Positions 999 through 62,797 are shown, counted from the stretch's first letter. The stretch is DNA of 64,000 nucleotides from Macrostomum lignano (GCA_002269645.1 NIVC01000906.1:310001-374000); one strand, 5' to 3'. The notes: generated by a model not told the origin, from the letters alone. A program made the numbers and translations.

Positions 999-3900
999 AT
1001 GCTAGCTTCTGGTCTGCTGCTTGTGTTGCTGCTTCTAGGGGCTGGGTCGCTCGCCATCGGGCAGCTGGAAGACTGCCAGCGGTTCTTCCCGAGTAGCCAG
1101 TGCCAGTGCAGCTGGAAGTACGAATTTGGTCAGGGACATCTGGCTGCCGACTGCGGCTTCGCGCCCGGAGCTGCCGAGAGCCTGCGCCTGCTGCTTGGCT
1201 GCGCAGGCGGCGTGGCCGAAAACCTGGTGATCTCCCTGACTCGGATCGGACCGCAGGTGCTGAACCTGGTTGATCAGCTGCGCAGGATTCCCCGGCTGAA
1301 GTACCTGGATCTCAGCGACAATCGGATATCCAGCCTGCCAGCCGGTGCGTTTTCCTCACATGGCTTCCCCCAGCTCAAACACCTGGTGCTCGATTCGAAC
1401 AGGCTCGAATCTTTGGGACCGGGCAGCCTCGCACTGCAGGGACTCGAGCTGCTCAGCCTGGCGAGAAACCGCATCACGCGGATCTCCTCAGCCGCCTTCC
1501 ACGGCGTCAGGCTCAACAAGATCAACTTGACCAACAACTCCTTGGACTCACTGACCGCCTGGCCGCTGCTGATTCGGCGACAGAATTTCGACAAGCGACT
1601 CGTGCTGGTGCTGGACAACAACCGCATCGCCAATTTCAGCTTGGAAGGCGGCGATTTCGACTTCTTCACTGACGGCTGCGGCTCGAGGCTACAGCGGGTG
1701 TCACCTCGAGCCTGGTGGTCGCACTGCCACCTGTCGGAGATCAAACTGGAGATCAGCTTGTCGCAGAACCGAATCGTCAGCCTGACGGACCTCCTGGACG
1801 GTTGGGAAATCGATGGCGAGGTGATCAGACAGCTGGGCGAGCGGAGTGCTCTGGTGTTCTCAAATCTGGCTGGCAACCCGCTCAGCTGCGACTGCAGAGA
1901 CTACCGACTGTACAACTCGTCAGCGGGCAATGTCAGCAGCTTGCTTTTGAAGTACACGGTGCTGCCACCGTGTCACAGCCCCCCGAATCTACTTGGACGT
2001 ATAATCTACTCGGCCGGCTACCGGCTCGAGCTGGACCCGCGCTCGGATCTGGTCTGCACCGACCGGTGCGTCGGCAACAGGTGCGTCTGCTCAGTTGAGC
2101 CCTGGCGACGCGCGGTGAGCGTTGACTGCTCGGGGGCTCGGCTGGACCGGCTGCCGCACCGGCGTGAGCTTCCGCGCCTCGGCGATGGCTTCGCCTACCG
2201 GTTCAACTTCAGCGGTGGCCAGCTGCCCGCCAGCCTGCCGGGCATGCCCGACGTGTTTCGCAACGCTGAGTCGCTCGACTTGAGTGACACCGGACTCGAG
2301 GAGCTGCCGGTGAAATTTTTGAGCCGCCTGGAGCGTCTGGAACTGCTGGACTTGCAGGCGAGTGGCTGAGATTTTTGGCCCGAAATCCACGTACCCGCTG
2401 ACAAAGTCCAAGAATTTTAAATATCAAATCAGCTTCTTTATTTGCCCATCATTTTCAACAAATGAGCTTTGTATCCATATGCAATGTCACTCCCGGGTTT
2501 GTAGCCATATGCAATGTCACTCTTGGGTTTGTAGCCATATGCAATGTCACTCCCGGGATCGTAGCCATATGCAATGTCACTCCCGCGTTTGTAGCCATAT
2601 GCAATGTCACTCCTGGGGTTTGTAGCCATATGCAATGTCACTCCTGGGTTTGTAGCCATATGCAATGTCACTTCCGGGTTTGTACCATATGCAATGTCAC
2701 TCCTTGGTTTTTAGCCTTAGATTGTAGCCATATTGTTTAGCATGTTGCTAAGTTAAACAATGGCCGAAATTTGAGCCCGCATGGAACGAGAGTCTCCCGG
2801 CCATGGCACACATACGAGGGGCATCCCAAAAGTCCGTCCAGTCACCGAAAAAACGCAACAGTGCAACAGGAAAGTTTAAAAACTTAACCGTGAGCGGTTG
2901 AGCTCTTTACTCGTCGTTTATGGTAAAAACGGCACATACCGAACGGACTTCTGGGATGCCCCTCGTACTTTCACCCGGACACAATCGCAATCAGAACCTT
3001 ACTGAATCGAAAGCAAGCAACCCCGTCTGCTTTCAGAACAACCGCCTTGCCCGGCTCGATCCCCGGGTCGCCAGCCTGACGCATCTCTGGCGGCTTCGCG
3101 ACATCCGTCTCCATGGCAACCCGTGGCGTTGTGACTGCGCCGGCACGGCCTGGCTGCCGGACTGGCTCGCCAGCCGCGGCTCCGATGCCGACGCTCGCTG
3201 CGCTTCGCCACGTCGCCTGACTGGCCGGCAGCTGCGGCGCCTGTCGCCACGGGACCTCTGTCCGGACACTCCGCCGAAGTCCGCTTCTTCTTCGACTTCG
3301 TCGTCAATGTCGTCCGCCTCGGAGGCCTCGCGGCGTCGCCTGTTCATCGCCCGCCTGCTGGCCTGCGGCGTCGGGGCGTCGCTCCTGTTGGTGGCAGCCG
3401 CGGCGGCCGCGGCCGGCCTCCTGCTGCTGCTGGCTGCCTCCGTCCGGGTGCGCCTCTACGCCCGCTGGGGCTTCCACCCGCTGGACAGGGACGACTGTCC
3501 GGGCGAGGGCAAGCGCTGCGATGCCTGCCTGCTGTTCCACCCGACAGACGGCGACTGGGTGTCCGGCGAGCTGGCCTCCGAGCTGCTGCGCCGCGGGCAC
3601 TCGCTGTGCTGCCACCAGCGCGCCCGCTTGCCGGGCCTGCCGGCTTTCCCGACTGTCGCCGAGGTCGTCGCCACTAGTCGACGAGTTGTCGCCGTGGTGA
3701 CGCCGAGCTTCGCGGCCGACGCGGAGATGCGCGGGCTGTTCGCCGCGGCCGCCGACTGCCTAGGAGAGCCGCTCTCCCGCCGACGCCTCGTCTGCGTGGT
3801 GGCGGTGCCGCCGCAGCCGCCGACGCCCGCCAAACCGACATCGTTGTCCACGTCGATGCTGTCCCGCTGGCCGACCCTGCCAGGCGGTTCGGGCGCCGCC

Positions 3901-4371
3901 GCCGCGGTGGTGCTGCGGTTCGGACAGCGCGACTTCTGGGACCAGCTGTTCTACCGGATGCCGGTTCAGCGGCCGGCGTCGGCAGCGGCCAGATTTCGGT
4001 TCCGGCGGCGGCCTCCCAGCGGCCAGTCCGACTCCGCCGGTTTCTCTACGCCGGAGCAGGTGCCGCCAAGCTGGTTGGACGGCGGCAGCTGTGGCTGCCA
4101 GCGGCCTCACCATCATCAGCATCAGCAGCAACTGCTGCTCTCAGATCCCAGGAGAAACTCTCTCCGGACTCTGCAGAGTCTGCGCTCAGCCCAGTCTCAG
4201 CAGCAGCTGTTGTTGGCCAGTCAGCTGACCGCCACGGAGAGACCGATTTGGGCGACCATCGGCTACGAGCACCGACAGCAGCAGCGGCAGCGGCGACCGG
4301 CTTCTCCGGTGGAGCCTGAGGGGCCAGGAACAGGCCTGGAGGTTCTCGAGTGCAGCGAGGCGTCACTCTGA
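999..4371 (+). CDS. Toll-like receptor, multi-cysteine-cluster type (LRR-LRRCT-LRRNT-LRR-LRRCT-TM-TIR), ~897 aa; join(999..2357,3037..4371)
   Basis: Signal peptide [21 protein letters not shown]; LRRs ([22 protein letters not shown]); internal NPLSCDC and CVCS..VDCSG clusters; GNPWRCDC; hydrophobic TM; juxtamembrane [14 protein letters not shown]; TIR box1 CDACLLF, box2 HQRARLPG, box3 [10 protein letters not shown]. The phase-0 splice CAG|GCGAGT...TTTCAG|AAC rebuilds an intact LRR (LELLDLQNNRL). Confidence 0.88.
2468..2712. repeat. 30-bp minisatellite (~8 copies) in the TLR intron
   Basis: Unit GTTTGTAGCCATATGCAATGTCACTCCCGG. Confidence 0.9.
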
Positions 4372-4506: not shown

Positions 4507-5243
4507 CCCCTCTCCTGCTCCCCTCTCCTGCTCTCTCCTGCTCCCCTCTCCTGCTCCCCTCTCCTGCTCCCCTCTCCTGCTCCCCTCTCCTGCTCCCCTC
4601 TCCTGCTCCCCTCTCCTGCTCTCTCCTGCTCCCCTCTCCTGCTCTCTCCTGCTCCCCTCTCCTGCTCTCTCCTGCTCCCCTCTCCTACTCTCTCCTGCTC
4701 TCTCCTGCTCCCCTCTCCTGCTCTCTCCTGCTCCCCTCTCCTGCTCTCTCCTGCTCCCCTCTCCTACTCTCTCCTGCTCCCCTCTCCTGCTCCCCTCTCC
4801 TGCTCTCTCCTGCTCCCCTCTCCTGCTCCCCTCTCCTGCTCCCCTCTCCTGCTCTCTCCTGCTCCCCTCTCCTGCTCCCCTCTCCTGCTCTCTCCTGCTC
4901 CCCTCTCCTGCTCCCCTCTCCTGCTCTCTCCTGCTCCCCTCTCCTGCTCCCCTCTCCTGCTCCCCTCTCCTGCTCTCTCCTGCTCCCCTCTCCTGCTCCC
5001 CTCTCCTGCTCCCCTCTCCTGCTCCCCTCTCCTGCTCCCCTCTCCTGCTCCCCTCTCCTGCTCCCCTCTCCTGCTCCCCTCTCCTGCTCCCCTCTCCTGC
5101 TCCCCTCTCCTGCTCCCCTCTCCTGCTCCCCTCTCCTGCTCCCCTCTCCTGCTCCCCTCTCCTGCTCCCTCTCCTGCTCCCCTCTCCTGCTCCCCTCTCC
5201 TGCTCCCCTCTCCTGCTCCCCTCTCCTGCTCCCCTCTCCCCCT
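4507..5243. repeat. ~13-bp polypyrimidine minisatellite
   Basis: Unit CTCTCCTGCTCCC with 10-13 bp variants. Confidence 0.92.
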
Positions 5244-5742
5244 CTTCTGATCCCCCTCTCCCCAATCTCCTTCTCCCTCTCTTCAATCGGTATCTCCATG
5301 TCCCCATTTTCTCTGCTCTCTCACTCTCCCCCATCCCCCTCCCTCTCAGTGTCTGGATTCTCCCACAATCTCTCCCCAGTCTCTGTTTGTCTCCACCAGT
5401 CAATATTCGTTTCCTCTTTGCTTACGCTTTGCTGCTCTTTCCAATTCAAAATGCTTCAGTTTGCTGATTGCACAGCTAGCTAACAATCAAACGAACCCAT
5501 GTACAAATTATAGTAACAAAACCTTTTGAATGCAAAGCTATGAAGAAATGAAAAGTGTACAAGAGTTCATGGGTTCTGCTTTCGCTTCTTTTATTGGACA
5601 ATGATGAAATATTTCCTAATAATTTTTTATTTACAAATAAAATAAGCTGAACATTCGCTCAAGAGCTTTGTTGGCAATTAAATTAGTAGTGAGAGTTTTC
5701 TTACTTGTTATTTATTTGTTTTGTTCTTCACTCACTTATGTC

Positions 5743-6488
5743 GGATTAGCTACTGTCTAACAGGATTAGCTACTGTCTAACAGGATTAGCTACTGTCTAA
5801 AAGGATTAGCTACTGTTTAACAGGATTAGCTACCATCTAACAGGATTAGCTACTATCTAACAGGATTAGCTACTATCTAACAGGATTAGCTACTATCTAA
5901 CAGGATTAGCTACTATCTAACAGGATTAGCTACTGTCTAACAGGATTGGCTACTGTTTAACAGGATTAGCTACCATCTAACAGGATTAGCTACTATCTAA
6001 CAGGATTAGCTACCATCTAACAGGATTAGCTACCATCTAACAGGATTAGCTACTATCTAACTGGATTAGCTACCATCTGACAGGATTAGCTACCATCTAA
6101 CAGGATTAGCTACCATCTGACAGGATTAGCTACCATCTAACAGGATTAGCTACCATCTAACAGGATTAGCTACTATCTAACAGGATTAGCTACCATCTAA
6201 CAGGATTAGCTACTATCTAACAGGATTAGCTACCATCTAACAGGATTAGCTACCATCTAACAGGATTAGCTACCATCTAACAGGATTAGCTACTATCTAA
6301 CAGGATTAGCTACCATCTAACAGGATTAGCTACTATCTAACAGGATTAGCTACCATCTAACAGGATTAGCTACTATCTAACAGGATTAGCTACCATCTGA
6401 CAGGATTAGCTACTATCTAACAGGATTAGCTACCATCTAACAGGATTAGCTACTATCTAACAGGATTAGCTGCTGTCTAACAGGATTA
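5743..6488. repeat. 20-bp minisatellite (~37 copies)
   Basis: Unit CAGGATTAGCTACTATCTAA. Confidence 0.93.
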
Positions 6489-7164: not shown

Positions 7165-7950
7165 GGATCTAATCTCAACTGGAATACAGCTAGATCTAGT
7201 CTCACTGGGATTGGTAGATCTACATGTAATCTAACTGAGATAGGTAAATCTAATCTCAATAGGATAAGTAGATCTAATCTCAATGAGATAAGTAGATCTA
7301 ATCTCAATGGGATAAGTAGATCATACTCGTATCTCAATGAGGTAAGTAGATCCAATCTCACTGAATTAGGTAGATCTAATCTAATTCCACTGGGATTGTT
7401 AGGCCTAATTTTAATGAGTTGGGTAGATCTAATCGCACTGAATAAAGATAGATCTAATCTCAATGAGCTAGGTAGATCTAATATTCCAATGAGAAAGGTA
7501 GATCTAATCTTAATAAGATAGGTAGATCTAATATGAAAGAGATGGTAGATCTAATCTCAATGATTTAGGTAGATCTAATCTCAATGATTTAGGTAGATCT
7601 AATCTCAATGATTTAGGTAGATCTAATCTCAATGATTTAGGTAGATCTAATCCCAACGATTTAGGTAGATTTAATCTCAATGATTTAGGTAGATCTAATC
7701 TCAATGATTTAGGTAGATCTAATCTCAATGATTTAGGTAGATCTAATCTCAATGATTTAGGTAGATCTAATCTCAATGATTTAGGTAGATCTAATCTCAA
7801 TGATTTAGGTAGATCTAATCTCAATGATTTAGGTAGATCTAACCTCAATGATTTAGGTAGATCTAATCTCAATGATTTAGGTAGATCTAATCTCAATGAT
7901 TTAGGTAGATCTAAACTCAATGAGAAGAAATAGGCAGATCTAATCTCACT
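7165..7950. repeat. 24-bp minisatellite
   Basis: Unit AGATCTAATCTCAATGATTTAGGT; homogeneous 7540-7920, degenerate on the left. Confidence 0.9.
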
Positions 7951-10877: not shown

Positions 10878-35280
<24,403 letters not shown>

Positions 35281-36373: not shown

Positions 36374-36828
36374 CAGCGCGGTTTCGGAACATTTTTCAAA
36401 GTGGGGGGCTATTGGTGGGGGACACATTGTATTACATTTTTGTAATTTAAGGGCCACCCTAAACCTGCTTTTATGTCAGTTTGAGACATTTTGACAACCA
36501 GACCCAATATTCAATTCGGTGTTGGTAGTCTGAAAATGCTCTAATTTTGAACTGATCTAAACATTGCGCAACTGTACTGCACTAGCCATCAATTTATTTC
36601 GTAAATTTCATTAATTTTTTATTAAATTTTTTTTAAAAAGTAGATTAGTATATCCTGAATGAATGAAAATTCCAGGGGCAAAACCAATTAGTTAATTTTA
36701 TGAATCTCTTGGTTGCCTCCTTCAGTTCCTCTTGGCGCTGTGTGTTGTTCTTTTAGTTGATGGCATTTTAGTCATTTTGGTTGCAGCGCTAGCAGCGGTT
36801 TAAGTAATGGGATTGCGGCAGACTCGAA
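36374..36828. mobile_element. Truncated second copy of the left end of the 37174 hAT element
   Basis: Begins CAGCGCGGTTTCGGAAC and is co-linear with 37174-37580 (e.g. TTCAAAGTGGGGGGCTATTGGTGGG, TTCAGTTCCTCTTGGCGCTG). Confidence 0.6.
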
Positions 36829-36829
36829 A

Positions 36830-37173
36830 ACAACAACAACAGAATACGCGTTCAGCGTCACAAGGTGCACCTCAAGGCCAGGTCGCGAATGAACGCCACG
36901 CCGTCGGCCGAATCCGGGACGCCGACAACGCGGAAGCTCTGTCGCCTGTCCTTCAGCGCCTCGGCACAAAATTGCAGCCTCGATGTCGTCCGGCACGCAG
37001 AGCACGACGGTCTTCTGCGTGTTGACCTCCAGGCCGACACTCGCCGCAACAGCAACTAGCTTGTCCAGTTGTCGCTGGGCGCCCTCGAAAGTTAAGGACA
37101 GCAGGGCGAGGTCGTCGGCGTATCCAAGCACGCTGAACCGTCTCTCCGGTTGACGTCCACCCACGCGTCGCCG
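36830..37173 (-). mobile_element. Non-LTR retrotransposon (RTE-like) reverse transcriptase fragment, 3' part
   Basis: RRFSVLGYADDLALLS...GLEVNTQKT (YADD motif); directly continues the 38706-38880 fragment across the hAT insertion. Confidence 0.8.
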
Positions 37174-38705
37174 CAGCGGTGTCGGAACATATTTCAAAGT
37201 GTGGGGGGCTATTGGTGGGAGGGCGCATTGCACATGATTTTTTAAATCTAAGGGCACCCTAATGTCAGTTAGCGACATTAATTGTGACAACCAGGCCAAT
37301 ATTCAATTCTGTGTTGGAAGTGGCCAAAAGTCTGAAAAATGTTCGAATTTTCAACTAATTCAAACATTGCGCAACGGCGCTGCACTATCAATCTATTTAG
37401 TAAATATCTCAAATGAATGAAAATTGCCAGGGCAAGAGACCAGTATTTTTCTGAATATCTTGGCTGCCTCCTTCAGTTCCTCTTGGCGCTGTTTCTTTAT
37501 TCTTTTATCTGACGGCATTTTAGTGTTTTTAGTTGCAGCGCCAGAAGCGGTTCAAGTCTTAAAATTGCGGCGGACTCGGAATTTGGATCAGGGACGCCAA
37601 AGTAAAACGATAAATACTAAAACAGGGGTTGGCAAACTCCGGCCTGAGGGCCAGATGTGGCCTGCAAAGCCTCTCTATCCGGCCCTTGGGTCCTTTGAAT
37701 CTTCACAATAGCAATCCGGCCCGCTCTATGTTTGTGTCTCTTCTCAGGTCTCTCTTCCCTCACCTCTCTCTTCTCATATTCTCCTCTTCTATGCTCTCTC
37801 CTTTCCTCTCCTCTCTCCTTTCCCCTCATCTCCTCACCTCTCCTGACCTCTCTCCCCTCCTCTCATCTCCTCCCCTCTCTCCTCTCCTTTCCTATCCTCT
37901 CCTCTCATCTCCTCACCTCTCTCCTCTCCTCACATCTCACTTCTCTCCTCACCTATCATCTCCTCACCTCTCTCCTCTCCTCTCCGCTCTCCTTTCCTCT
38001 CATCTCCTCACCTCTCCTCAATTCTCTTCTCTCCTCTCATCTCCTCACCTCTCTCCTCTCCTCTCCTTTCATCTCACCTCTTTCCTCTCCTCTCCTCTCC
38101 TCTCCTCACCTCTCTCCTCTCCTCTCATCTCCCGTTTCCTCTCCTTTCTCTTCTCCCTTCCCTCCTCTCTCCTCTCCTTATCTCATCTCTCTTATATTTC
38201 GACTCTCCTCTCCTCATTCATCTCCCCTCTTCTCTCTCCTCTCCTATTTTATCTCTCTTCTCGTCTACTCTCTTGTCCTTTGTTCCTTCGCCTCTCCTTT
38301 CTCCTGCGCTCGTATTTCTTTTCTCTATTTCCCATCCTCTCTCCCTATAGCCCGCAGTCATCGGGGACTCCTGGGTGCGCGTTTCGCTTAAGGGGCCCAG
38401 CGAAGCGGACCCAGAAGGGCAGTCATGCGCTGTTCTCAATCTGGCCCTTCAGGTAAAAAGTTCGCTGACCCCTGCACTAAAAGCACTAGGCTTAGGCACA
38501 TTAGATAAAAACTGTAGTGAAATGGGATTGAGAACAACATGAACTATTATATCAGCTGGTACCCTAGCTTCTAAGACTCAGAAAAGCCAAAGCCAAAAAC
38601 CGGCCGACACTTGCTTGAAAATCAAAAAGGGCACTTGCAGGATAATGCTAAAAAGTGGGGCGGGCTGCAGCCCCCCCACGCCCCCCCCCGGTTCCGACAC
38701 CCCTG
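37174..38705. mobile_element. Non-autonomous hAT-like DNA transposon inserted into the LINE RT
   Basis: TIRs CAGCGGTGTCGGAAC (37174-37188) and GTTCCGACACCCCTG (38691-38705); perfect 8-bp TSD CGTCGCCG at 37166-37173 and 38706-38713. Confidence 0.8.
37623..38474. mobile_element. hAT-like MITE nested in the larger hAT element, TC-rich interior
   Basis: Ends CAGGGGTTGGCAAACT / AGTTCGCTGACCCCTG; flanks TACTAAAA / CACTAAAA (7 of 8 TSD match). Confidence 0.7.
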
Positions 38706-39728: not shown

Positions 39729-42508
39729 TCAGTCGTCAGCAGCAGCCTCTGCAGCTGCATCCGCCTCAGCGTCCCTCCGAGCACTGTCTAGCAGGCTGTG
39801 AATTCGCTGACCAATCTGCTCAAAGTTGAACGGCCGATTGCGCACCCAGAGCTGGTACGGATTCATCATCGGCCTGCCGTCCAGTCGGTTTCTCAGCTCA
39901 TTGCACCGAGCAACGTAGCGCTCAAAGTCGCGGACGAAATGCTTTGCGGCCCTGCGGCGCATCTCAACAGGCAGAGGCGATTGTTTCGGATCCAGCTGGT
40001 CGCAAACCGCCACCCGCAGGGTCTCGTAGCTGAGAAAGTCGCTGTACAGTTGTTTCCACTCTAGCAGCTGGTTCTGATCGAATGCCGGCTCGTTATCCCA
40101 CGGCATTTCGTTGAAACGAGCTTGCAGCGAGTGCAGCACGTTAGCCAAGGTGTGAGTGGGTTCCCAGGCGTTGCCGAGCCAGGTGCCCAGGATGCTGAGA
40201 CAGACGCAGCCGTTCTCGTAGAAGTTCGGATTGAATCGCACTGTGCCACGGCCGGTGGTTATGAGGGCTACTCGAGGCGGCCTGGAAAAGTTTGTATATA
40301 ATATGCACTAAATGAATACTTTAGGCTGTGCCTGTCTACATGACTGTGCATGTACTATTCAGGGGGTCGGCAAACTCTGGTCGCCGGGGAAGCCTCTCTA
40401 TCCGGCCCTCGGGTCCTTTGAAACTTTACTATAGCAATCAGACTCGATCAAAGTTTGTGCCTCTTCTCAGCTCTCTTCTCTCTTCATTCATCTCTCCTTT
40501 CTACTCTCTTCACTCTCCTCTCGCCTCTCATCGATCTTTCCTCTCCATGAGCTAGATTTTTTATGGGATCTTTGAGGTAAAAACCGACCCCTGATGTGCA
40601 TGGACGCTGACTGCGCATATATTGGAGCCTGCAGGCTGCAGGATCCTCGGACAGGATATCGTATCTCGAGATCTATCCCCGTCCAGACTTGTCCTGAGAT
40701 CCTATCCCCGTCCAGACTTGTCCTGAGATCCTATCCAGACTTGTCCTGAAATCCTATCCCGACTTGTCCTGAGATCCTATCCCGACTTGTCCTGAGATCC
40801 TATCCCGACTTGTCCTGAGATCCTATCCAGACTTGTCCTGAGATCCTATCCAGACTTGTCCTGAGATCCTATCCAGACTTGTCCTGAGATCCTATCCAGA
40901 CTTGTCCTGAGATCCTATCCCGACTTGTCCTGAGATCCTATCCAGACTTGTCCTGAGATCCTATCCAGACTTGTCCTGAGATCCTATCCAGACTTGTCCT
41001 GAGATCCTATCCCGACTTGTCCTGAGATCCTATCCAGACTTGTCCTGAAATCCTATCCAGACTTGTCCTGAGATCCTATCCCGACTTGTCCTGAAATCCT
41101 ATCCAGACTTGTCCTGAGATCCTATCCCGACTTGTCCTGAAATCCTATCCCGACTTGTCCTGAGATCCTATCCCGACTTGTCCTGAGATCCTATCCCGAC
41201 TTGTCCTGAGATCATATCCCGACTTGTCCTGAAATCCTATCCAGACTTGTCCTGAGATCCTATCCCGACTTGTCCTGAGATCCTATCCCGACTTGTCATG
41301 AGATCCTATCCCGACTTGTCCTGAGATCCTATCCAGACTTGTCCTGAGATCCTATCCCGACTTGTCATGAGATCCTATCCCGACTTGTCATGAGATCCTG
41401 TCTTGCCCTGTCTCGACACCGTTCGAGCACTGATAGTAACCGGATAATGTCTAGCTAACAAATAAAATGCGCATTTAGACATATAGTTTACATAAACATG
41501 TACATTGAATCGGTACATTAGTTAAAAAAGCTTGGAAATGCATCCTCCATTTAGAATTCTTAATGGATTTCTTAAAGTTGTTAAACTTTCTTGTAGCGGC
41601 AGTGGTCATGTTTTCTTAACATGTGCACTTCCTTATAGTACAGTTTAGCAGCTAGACTGGAATCTGTAAGGGGCGCCAATATTAGTATTTTGGTGGGCGC
41701 CCCTGTCTTATGCTTGTCGCTTCTATCTCTTTTGGTGGGCGCTGCTGTCTTTTGACAGGCGCCCCTGTCTCATGCTTGGCGCCCCTGTCTCTCTTAGTGG
41801 ACGCCCTTGTCTCATGCTTGGCGCCCGTGGCTCATGCTTGGCGCCCCTGTCTCATGCTTGGCGTCCCTGTCTAATGATTGGCGCTCCTGTCTCTCTTGGT
41901 GAGCGCCCCTGTTCCTGTCTATTCGGCTAATACTGGATGCTACATCCAAGAGGTGGCAAAAGGTGAGCTCCTGTCATTCATCGAGCTTATGGTTTGCCTC
42001 CTTTTTATCTAGGTATCTGAGGAGTGCAACCTGCGACGCTGCTGCAGTTTATGGCCAAAGTTTTTTGCGGAACTGTATACGTTAAACAGCTACAAAAACA
42101 CACGGTACAATGCCCCGATAAAAATGGTAATAATTATCTTATTTACTTTTCCGGATATTCTGGCGGCGCGCGAACAGCAAAATGAAAGAATCCGCCTTCG
42201 TACGGCGTATCGGGTTGGCCACGGATCAGGTAGTCGATTCGAGAAGTGTCGTTCTCGTTGGGAAACACATCGGCACCAGGGCGCCGCTCCTCTGGCATGA
42301 GATTGCGCAGATCTGACAGAATACGGGCTACACAGCTTGGTCCGTAGCTGCTGATACTGAATTGAATTCTGTCAGGGTGCCACTCGTCAGGCCTTTGCAC
42401 GATAGGAATAGGAGCCACTGGTGGCAGACCTCCGAGCTGTTCAAACATTTGCTGCAGCGCTTCAAATGGAAACTGGATTAGATTTTCATTGTCCATATCT
42501 TCAGCCAT
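39729..42508 (-). CDS. UBE2Z: Ubiquitin-conjugating enzyme E2 Z (USE1)-like, ~304 aa; exons 42508-42147 and 40281-39729
   Basis: Motifs GQPDTPYEGGFFHF, PPEYPEKPPRV (phase-2 splice AA|G), TTGRGTVRFNPNFYENGCVCLSILGTW with the catalytic Cys, and NEPAFDQ match the UBE2Z subfamily. Confidence 0.88.
40360..40593. mobile_element. Short, internally deleted copy of the 37623 hAT MITE family
   Basis: CAGGGGGTCGGCAAACT ... AAAAACCGACCCCTG; shares AAGCCTCTCTATCCGGCCC and GGGTCCTTTGAA with the 37623 copy; no TSD visible. Confidence 0.55.
40665..41400. repeat. 23-bp minisatellite (UBE2Z intron)
   Basis: Unit ATCCTATCCAGACTTGTCCTGAG. Confidence 0.93.
41690..41915. repeat. ~20-bp degenerate minisatellite
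   Basis: Unit GCGCCCCTGTCTCATGCTTG. Confidence 0.75.
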
Positions 42509-43243
42509 ATTTTGTTTGGTATCTAAAAACATTAGTAAAATTAAGTAAATAAACAGCTTTTAAAATGGACTTTTCAGACTATAATTTTAATTACTTTTTT
42601 CTCTATCGTCCACCTATGATTGACCAACAAGCATCCTACAAAAATTGTATCATCTAAAATTTTTTGTGACATTAGGCTATATCAAGTAGAAGTATACATG
42701 CGTTTTTATTACCCATGCAGAAGTCAGAACCCTAGCCTGACTCTCAGTATACTGACCTTTTAAAAGTATTTAATATTAATTTGAGTAAGATATTTCATTA
42801 CTGATGGTTGCACAAATACCAATAGGCCTACTATTGGATTTCTTGGCCTCCCAAAGCTAGCGTAGTGGTAGAATATTGTAGAGGTACTTACTTCTATTTG
42901 CAAATAATTGAGATGTCCTTCACCTTTAATTTTAATTATAGTTTGTATCGTCAAAGATTACTCAAATATACAGACAAACAAAGCAAGTCTCTCATGCAAC
43001 TTTTATAAATCAAATACACAGATTATTTTACTGTGCGCATTGCTCTAATGGTTCTTGGAAGATCCGAGTGACTAAGTTACTGCTCTTTCTTTCTCCGCAA
43101 ATGTCCTCGCTCTTGATATTGCATTAGAGTATTTGAATTGTAACGAAAGCGAAAATTTTCGCTTTTACAAATTAGATATTTAACAAAAACATTAACATCT
43201 TTACATAATTGTCGTATTAACGTTAGTTTTAAATAATTTAAAG

Positions 43244-54019: not shown

Positions 54020-62797
<8,778 letters not shown>

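Follow-up and report, generated by a model that had tools for sequence, protein, structure and literature searches.

Toll-like receptors (TLRs) are conventionally recognized by leucine-rich repeats (LRRs), a transmembrane helix and a TIR domain carried on a single chain (Orus-Alcalde 2021; Brennan & Gilmore). Those of the multiple-cysteine-cluster (mcc) or P-type have, in addition, at least two LRRCT modules, and their repeats are divided by an internal LRRCT-LRRNT pair. Drosophila Toll and other arthropod Tolls (structures 4lxr and 4bv4, and Toll5A in 7b1b and 7b1d) exemplify this arrangement in the order LRR block, LRRCT-LRRNT, second LRR block, LRRCT, transmembrane helix and TIR. Flatworms are reported to have no such receptors. 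The genome of Macrostomum lignano has been listed with 0 TLRs and the loss placed probably early in Platyhelminthes (Orus-Alcalde et al. 2021, PMC8609888), none was found in the phylum by Saco et al. 2023 (PMC10279657), and two reviews (PMC7958881, PMC6043800) agree that flatworms lack them. Here we describe a gene at positions 999-4371, on the + strand, of a 64,000-nucleotide stretch of M. lignano DNA (GCA_002269645.1, NIVC01000906.1:310001-374000; the whole stretch is called the window below). With a probability of roughly 0.8, it is a genuine Macrostomum gene, intact and host-encoded, with canonical mcc-TLR architecture. A preliminary description of the window had stated that surveys of platyhelminths reported no full-length TLRs, and the four sources just cited say the same.

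Read from its amino terminus, the encoded protein has a signal peptide, an LRRNT, about 8 LRRs, an LRRCT-LRRNT pair, about 4 further LRRs, an LRRCT, a transmembrane helix, a TIR domain and a glutamine-rich tail. At least one extracellular LRR, a membrane helix of probable type I topology and a TIR domain recognized by sensitive tests thus lie on one predicted chain, and cysteine patterns at amino acids (aa) 297-353, 357-377 and 485-528 provide the paired LRRCT modules and the internal LRRCT-LRRNT division of the P-type. The Drosophila-Toll-like mcc layout had already been proposed in the preliminary description, from signal peptide, LRRs and CT/NT clusters through a second LRR block and LRRCT to the membrane helix and TIR. 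Every one of these parts could be located. Nine of the cap cysteines fall on invariant columns of 24 receptors, and the TIR domain is recovered by hidden Markov model (HMM), reciprocal search, Protein Data Bank (PDB) comparison and fold.

The gene is assembled from two long open reading frames (ORFs) on the + strand, 921-2369 and 2920-4371. Exon 1 (999..2357, 453 codons, aa 1-453) starts at the first ATG past an upstream stop, directly before a hydrophobic leader, and encodes the signal peptide, the N-terminal cap, LRR block 1, the first LRRCT, the second LRRNT and the opening portion of LRR block 2. Exon 2 (3037..4371 including the stop codon, aa 454-897) supplies the last LRRs, the second LRRCT, a linker, the membrane helix, the TIR domain and the tail. 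Between them lies a predicted phase 0 intron of the GC-AG type (2358..3036), with donor CAG|GCGAGT and acceptor CTGCTTTCAG|AAC, the acceptor being stated a second time as ccccgtctgctttcag|AAC. The spliced product is 897 aa long in one continuous frame that closes at 4371, and the two-exon ORF originally outlined at 999-4371 is exact in both coordinates and length.

Could the LRR exon and the exon carrying membrane helix and TIR instead belong to separate transcripts, for instance one for a secreted LRR-only protein ending at 2367-2369 and another for a separate TIR gene? The splice is a prediction, its donor is GC and not GT, and an in-frame TGA at 2367-2369, 10 nucleotides into the intron, would stop the protein there if the intron were retained. 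Against this, the exon join restores a complete repeat, 'LELLDLQ|NNRLARL' (LxxLxLxxNxLxxL): exon 2 starts partway through an LRR, the remainder of which exon 1 supplies exactly, and the 24-residue period is maintained through the junction. Furthermore, exon 2 has neither a signal peptide of its own nor a plausible start, as the ATG at 2920 leads into a hydrophilic leader. In GC-AG introns the donor usually follows the consensus everywhere except at +2, and the donor at 2358 does agree with it at all other positions. Separate transcripts are therefore a very improbable explanation, and exon 2 alone would still encode LRRs, LRRCT, membrane helix and TIR. A GT donor three bases downstream (GCGA|GTGGCT) was considered and rejected: it fits the consensus poorly, and the extra residue would disrupt the LRR register.

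The ectodomain opens with a predicted signal peptide (999..1061, aa 1-21), the second-highest hydropathy peak of the protein, which AlphaFold2 (AF2) models as a helix at aa 3-13. An LRRNT-like cysteine cluster follows (1074..1202; C26, C35, C37, C52 and C68), with the pattern CxnCxCxnC over aa 26-52; the alignment columns of C35 and C52 are nearly invariant among the Tolls compared, AF2 confidence is low here, and the Pfam scan gave no LRRNT match for this cluster. LRR block 1 (1215..1874, aa ~73-292) consists of about 8 repeats and contains an irregular insert (aa 217-245). Motifs of the form LxxLxLxxNxL occur at aa 100, 126, 149 and 172, and the AF2 model places strands at aa 76, 100, 128, 151, 174, 200, 249 and 284, with a predicted local distance difference test score (pLDDT) of 80-95 over aa 80-200. 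Next comes the internal LRRCT (1875..2057, aa 293-353), 'GNPLSCDC...C...C', with C297, C299, C325 and C353 and low AF2 confidence over aa 307-351. Three residues past it starts the internal LRRNT (2067..2129, aa 357-377), 'CVGNRCVC...VDC', with C357, C362, C364 and C377 and pLDDT 84-91. LRR block 2 is split by the intron into a first part (2130..2357, aa 378-453) and a last part (3037..3117, aa 454-480, with N455 and L478 in invariant columns), Pfam LRR_14 matching at aa 426-474. The repeats thus number about 12, as 8 + 4 repeat strands in the AF2 model. The membrane-proximal LRRCT (3118..3261, aa 481-528), 'GNPWRCDC...C...C', holds C485, C487, C508 and C528 and is joined to the membrane helix by a serine-rich linker.

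The cap cysteines were placed on an alignment of 24 Toll-type receptors, mostly protostome (arthropods, nematodes and metagenome or Sequence Read Archive assembly sources). Nine of them are invariant there (C297, C299, C353, C362, C364, C377, C485, C487 and C508) and C357 is nearly so; all twelve cysteines of the internal LRRCT, the internal LRRNT and the membrane-proximal LRRCT are in place. Pfam, to which the preliminary description had looked for LRR, LRRCT and TIR domains in the 897-aa model, gave a divided answer. The LRR models score above their cut-offs (LRR_8 at E=5.6e-22 and 77.7 bits against a cut-off of 27, LRR_4 at 6.6e-17 and 61.6 bits, LRR_1 at 26.1 bits), whereas the TIR and LRRCT models fall below theirs, the LRRCT match being weak (E=0.059) and LRRCT and LRRNT both under threshold. 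Among solved structures compared by sequence, the ectodomain of Aedes Toll5A gives a single match of 410 residues (aa 86-495, E=1.9e-14), aa 419-521 match the LRR and LRRCT ends of TLR3, LRRC15 and FLRT, and the membrane-proximal LRRCT aligns with those of LRRC15, LRIG1 and the Nogo receptor. In the full-length AF2 model, built on the alignment of the 24 receptors, LRR block 1 and the region of the second LRRNT and LRR block 2 reach pLDDT 80-95, and a Foldseek search with this model returned as best PDB entries by E-value Drosophila Toll 4lxr (2e-10), 4lxs and 4bv4, TOL-1 8suf and Toll5A 7b1d and 7b1b, solved mcc-type ectodomains holding 5 of the top 6 ranks. Cap cysteines and fold matches together mark the ectodomain as being of the Toll type, the fold matches serving as supporting evidence, short of proof.

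Hydropathy of the whole protein shows just two peaks, at aa 1-21 and at aa 555-588. The second and highest is the Ala/Leu-rich transmembrane helix (3340..3441, aa ~555-588), which AF2 extends as a continuous helix over aa 548-597, with an alpha/beta domain beyond it; together with the order of domains, the profile points to type I topology with a single membrane passage between the LRRs and the TIR domain. The TIR domain itself (3508..3972, aa ~611-765) is followed by a low-complexity, Arg/Gln/His-rich tail (3973..4368, aa 766-897) in which a Pfam scan found no domain. To judge from their lengths, several of the arthropod Toll-family matches likewise carry long C-terminal extensions.

The identity of the TIR domain is carried by several comparisons. 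One HMM was built on TIR sequences of TLRs alone, 34 receptors that had been found via their LRRs and are hence independent of the query TIR; it gives the cytoplasmic tail 50.8 bits (E=7e-18 for one sequence, HMM positions 8-149), as against a maximum of 10.1 over 1000 shuffles. An exhaustive phmmer search of aa 596-775 against 1.84 billion cluster representatives gave 84 matches at E<=1e-3, the best at 4.9e-10, and all 84 contain a TIR domain by an ad hoc HMM. Among the best 14, ten were scanned and all exceed the Pfam TIR cut-offs, seven having LRRs as well; named matches include Branchiostoma TLR1, Arenicola TLR14, an Antedon LRR-TIR protein, a Bracon Toll-type protein and a 'protein toll'. 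In a phmmer search of the PDB, chicken TLR15 (3.4e-7), TLR1 (1.9e-4) and TLR6 (1e-3) lead, and 20 of the 21 listed matches are TIR domains, the exception being a CheY-like receiver domain at E=0.33. The AF2 model of aa 590-783 (pLDDT 71.8, predicted TM-score, pTM, 0.69) shows five alternating strand-helix units, which is the TIR topology, and the top 50 Foldseek matches are TIR domains without exception, with TLR1, TLR15, Hydra TRR-2, IL-1RAPL and MyD88 foremost (7nuw at 5.5e-7, 7ylg, 4w8h). At the level of motifs, box 1 ('CDACLLF') keeps its Asp, and box 2 keeps 'LC.H.R' and the Pro-Gly of the BB loop ('RARLPG'), so that Cys, His, Arg, Pro and Gly are all present there; also retained are the 'SRR..VV..S.F' strand and the FW of box 3. 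Sequence and modelled fold together indicate that the cytoplasmic domain is a real and complete, but divergent, TIR domain.

Where this TIR domain belongs among TLRs is less clear-cut. Family HMMs give 53.8 bits for arthropod Tolls, 31.8 for deuterostome and 0.5 for nematode receptors, and single-sequence scores are highest for insect Toll10, Tollo and Toll (40-46 bits); an Ala-rich composition in common may have raised the arthropod scores. In a neighbour-joining tree of TIR domains, made without MyD88, IL-1R or SARM outgroups, the query sits on a very long branch and pairs with the annelid Arenicola TLR14 at 43% support.

A number of observations weigh against the reading of the locus as an intact mcc TLR of Macrostomum. 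The gene model relies on a GC donor, the rarer type, and exact look-ups of both exon ORFs returned no matching record. Pfam scores for the TIR domain are below gathering (PF01582, 18.8 against 21.3 bits; PF13676, 20.6 against 28). Two residues nearly invariant in the TLRs compared, the Asp of 'RD', now Ala, and the Trp of 'SEW', are missing, and a Pro/Ala-rich insert of about 30 residues, modelled by AF2 at low confidence, separates the fourth and fifth strands. Full-length AF2 confidence is modest (mean pLDDT 64.9, pTM 0.43, Foldseek TM-scores ~0.2), and both AF2 models rest on TLR alignments and so may be biased towards TLR folds. Neither the tree nor the family HMMs settle the TLR clade (alpha, beta or gamma). 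Finally, an ortholog was not found in any other flatworm, and the match to other M. lignano DNA covers only ~46-64 kb of the window and stops about 42 kb short of the TLR.

The weakness of the Pfam scores is what made more sensitive tests of the TIR domain necessary, and these it passed; a gathering score is the threshold of a generic model and no structural criterion. The match to the TIR boxes is partial, the box 2 Asp and the 'SEW' Trp, which belongs to the helix after the third strand, having been lost. One may ask whether the protein has the architecture of a TLR but a divergent TIR domain that no longer recruits MyD88, acting instead as a cell-surface recognition or adhesion receptor or as a decoy. 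The sub-threshold Pfam score, the two replaced positions and the length of the tree branch all lean that way, as do the best ectodomain sequence matches, which are adhesion-type LRR proteins (chaoptin, artichoke and LRRC15), and the best single-sequence TIR scores, which go to proteins of the insect Toll10/Tollo type. Some of the long Tolls of Drosophila are reported to act as recognition or adhesion receptors of this kind in tissue morphogenesis. Yet the conserved elements of box 1 (Asp), the BB loop (Pro-Gly) and box 3 (FW) all persist, as does the 'SRR..VV..S.F' strand, and the TIR HMM is matched from end to end, which makes such a receptor on balance unlikely. It would in any case touch function alone and leave the family assignment as it is.

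The lack of matching records raises the question of whether the locus is a relic, either unexpressed or inactivated not long ago, in which a decaying TLR gene is still open by chance. No transcript or protein record was found and the TIR domain is divergent. The DNA is also GC-rich, with ORFs of 100-200 aa in other frames too, and the probability of an open frame given base composition is only as low as 7e-4 for exon 2. For exon 1, however, it is 2e-6, and the joint chance of 897 open codons in two exons is ~1e-9; the twelve cap cysteines and the TIR core motifs are also in place. Third-position G+C content (GC3) is 0.78 in exon 1 and 0.82 in exon 2, compared with 0.45-0.60 at second positions (GC2), a strong frame-specific bias typical of the neighbouring expressed genes and similar to that of the IMPDH, UBE2Z and carrier genes and the scrib LRR exons of the window. 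Indeed, the missing records are not peculiar to this gene. A word-index search of the full-length protein against 5.8 billion sequences found neither a flatworm relative nor a near-identical protein, LRR matches dominating, and the exhaustive search of 1.84 billion representatives of 15 billion proteins gave no close protein and no close spiralian ortholog, its best E being the 4.9e-10 given above. M. lignano proteomes are included in both collections, and the housekeeping gene UBE2Z of the same window is likewise missing from public protein sets, the best match to its last exon being 40-45% identical. The absence of the TLR from these sets would accordingly reflect incomplete annotation, and decay of the gene is improbable.

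The same circumstance bears on why earlier surveys did not report the receptor. The survey that listed M. lignano without TLRs took predicted proteins as its input, filtering them by a TIR HMM and next by an LRR HMM before BLAST and SMART (PMC8609888). Most likely, the gene was missed because it is absent from predicted proteomes, the sub-threshold generic TIR score being a second obstacle and one reason for pipelines to annotate the protein as LRR-only. A Macrostomum TLR was not reported in the literature searched, and a paper on acoel immunity (PMC12849515) contains nothing on flatworm TLRs.

The Macrostomum-like source that the preliminary description had suspected is confirmed by the opposite end of the window. 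The IMPDH gene on the - strand (exons between 54023 and 62862) has a conceptual product identical at 510 of 515 residues (99%) to the UniRef IMPDH of M. lignano, as against 73% for the best non-Macrostomum animals. Two more M. lignano models match it at 93-96% identity, the differences lying chiefly in exon usage. In addition, ~46-64 kb of the window is collinear with M. lignano NIVC01000978.1 (111519-142079) at 93-98% DNA identity, with IMPDH, a small gene and a mitochondrial-carrier gene in common order. An identity of this order is below what one allele in a single assembly would show, so the window would represent a homeologous or haplotypic copy or a sibling species.

Since this match stops short of the TLR, and the best TLR protein matches are arthropods, the TLR end could in principle derive from another animal through contamination or chimeric assembly. 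Identity to any arthropod protein is just 21-31%, however, and points to no contaminant from a sequenced taxon. The GC3 of the gene is like that of its neighbours, and the window has no N runs or gaps. Similar dense minisatellites of 8-40 bp occupy the intron and 3' flank of the TLR and nearly all other introns of the window, as far as the IMPDH end, the one in the TLR intron having a 30-bp unit in 8.3 copies (2468-2716, Tandem Repeats Finder). A foreign TLR end is thus extremely improbable. Transfer of a bacterial LRR-TIR gene was also considered and rejected in view of the intron, the signal peptide and the animal-type LRRNT and LRRCT caps. For a native Macrostomum receptor, vertical descent, that is, a retained TLR, is the likeliest reading.

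In all, 46 minisatellite families with units of 8-40 bp in tens of copies each are spread across the window, filling introns and intergenic DNA; examples besides the array at 2468-2716 lie at 4507-5261, 5743-6488, 7227-7923, 17927-18650, 21102-22000, 22506-25100, 40573-41540 and 60792-61990, and a CT-rich array with 13/36-bp units begins 136 bp 3' of the TLR stop codon. A large inverted repeat has arms at 31234-32095 and 32954-33815, each 862 nucleotides long and 96% complementary, with 858 nucleotides between them. Staggered matches between the arms suggest internal tandem sub-repeats of ~150 nucleotides, and the structure may be a foldback-type element. A reverse-transcriptase fragment at 36772-37299 (- strand; RVT_1 E=1.3e-5, below gathering) is presumably a retroelement remnant.

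Further genes on the - strand accompany the receptor. The UBE2Z-like gene occupies 39729-42532 with two UQ_con exons. Within 11362-26473, LRR exons at 20677-21111 and 25844-26473 are consistent with a scrib call, and the ORFs of the putative scrib PDZ region (11362-11847 and 15598-16093), taken as mechanical ORFs, gave no Pfam match. IMPDH has two versions of one exon (60468-60638 and 57041-57256), and either version, or the two together, appears in public M. lignano models, so that the pair looks like a duplicated, possibly mutually exclusive one. One IMPDH intron also holds a GC-rich ORF of 254 aa (58191-58955) with a hydrophobic N-terminus; it has no Pfam match, and the M. lignano record places no gene there. 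Scanned against Rfam, the window yielded neither a spliced-leader RNA nor any other marker RNA.

How such a receptor would work can be sketched from its parts and its family. It would be a type I membrane protein with a short LRR ectodomain (~8 + 4 repeats) split by the LRRCT-LRRNT pair and closed by a second LRRCT, with one membrane helix and a cytoplasmic TIR domain. By analogy with the Toll/TLR family, a ligand would drive dimerization of the ectodomains and thereby juxtapose two TIR domains. In mcc Tolls this ligand is typically a cystine-knot protein of the Spatzle type and not a microbial molecule bound directly, and the same may apply here. Once paired, the TIR domains would recruit a MyD88-type adaptor by way of the BB-loop surface, whose Pro-Gly is conserved in this protein, and the adaptor would engage a kinase/NF-kB or mitogen-activated protein kinase cascade, as in other members of the family. 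MyD88 has been reported in the planarian Schmidtea mediterranea (PMC7958881), so the phylum does possess such an adaptor. With the 'RD' and 'SEW' residues changed and the branch so long, a non-canonical function, whether in adhesion or as a decoy, is a serious possibility, and the canonical signalling route is best treated as tentative, with odds that fall a little short of even.

The wider claim is that a functional canonical Toll receptor survives in Macrostomum, an early-branching flatworm, and that the textbook loss of TLRs at the base of Platyhelminthes is mistaken; it seems to us slightly favoured over its negation. If it holds, TLRs were lost later, after Macrostomorpha had split off, and the part played by Toll in immunity, regeneration and development would become testable in a flatworm that is transgenic and amenable to RNA interference. 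The short ectodomain and divergent TIR domain could then mark a fast-evolving, flatworm-specific TLR lineage of a kind that standard domain searches would also miss in other 'TLR-less' phyla. Maps of TLR presence and absence underlie inferences on the evolution of innate immunity, and flatworms, with M. lignano by name, have been cited as a case of phylum-wide loss (PMC8609888, PMC10279657). A complete LRR-transmembrane-TIR gene would show that such 'absences' can stem from incomplete gene sets and the thresholds of generic HMMs. The family is a known one and the molecule is of no new kind; what is new is its presence in a phylum, and in effect in the species, reported to lack TLRs.

Set beside described receptors, the Macrostomum protein resembles each of several groups in part. 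With arthropod Tolls it has in common the order of its domains and a box 3 motif akin to their 'FWEKLRYAMP', whereas it is far shorter (897 aa and ~12 LRRs against 1,100-1,500 aa), only 21-26% identical, and set apart in its TIR domain by the altered 'RD' and 'SEW' and the Pro/Ala-rich insert. Spiralian TLRs, such as Arenicola marina TLR14 and the expanded mollusc and annelid families, are its expected phylogenetic neighbours, and Arenicola TLR14 is indeed among the 84 phmmer matches. Among solved structures, the cytoplasmic domain is matched best, in sequence and in fold, by the TIR domains of vertebrate TLR1, TLR6, TLR10 and chicken TLR15 and by Hydra TRR-2. Identity to these is 16-22%, and the receptors themselves differ in kind, the vertebrate TLRs being of the single-cysteine-cluster (V-type) form and the Hydra TRR having no LRRs. 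In the lineage of Caenorhabditis elegans, where the pathway is reduced, TOL-1 (8suf) is the only mcc TLR; it ranks third among the fold matches of the ectodomain and is also a PDB sequence match, while its TIR domain is unlike that of Macrostomum, the nematode HMM and pairwise scores being close to 0 bits. Within the phylum, 20 TIR proteins of S. mediterranea were analysed in silico, 0 of them having LRRs (PMC7958881), and other flatworm proteins drawn from the same domain families have LRRs or a TIR domain but never both; the Macrostomum protein has both, in one frame, with a transmembrane helix between them.

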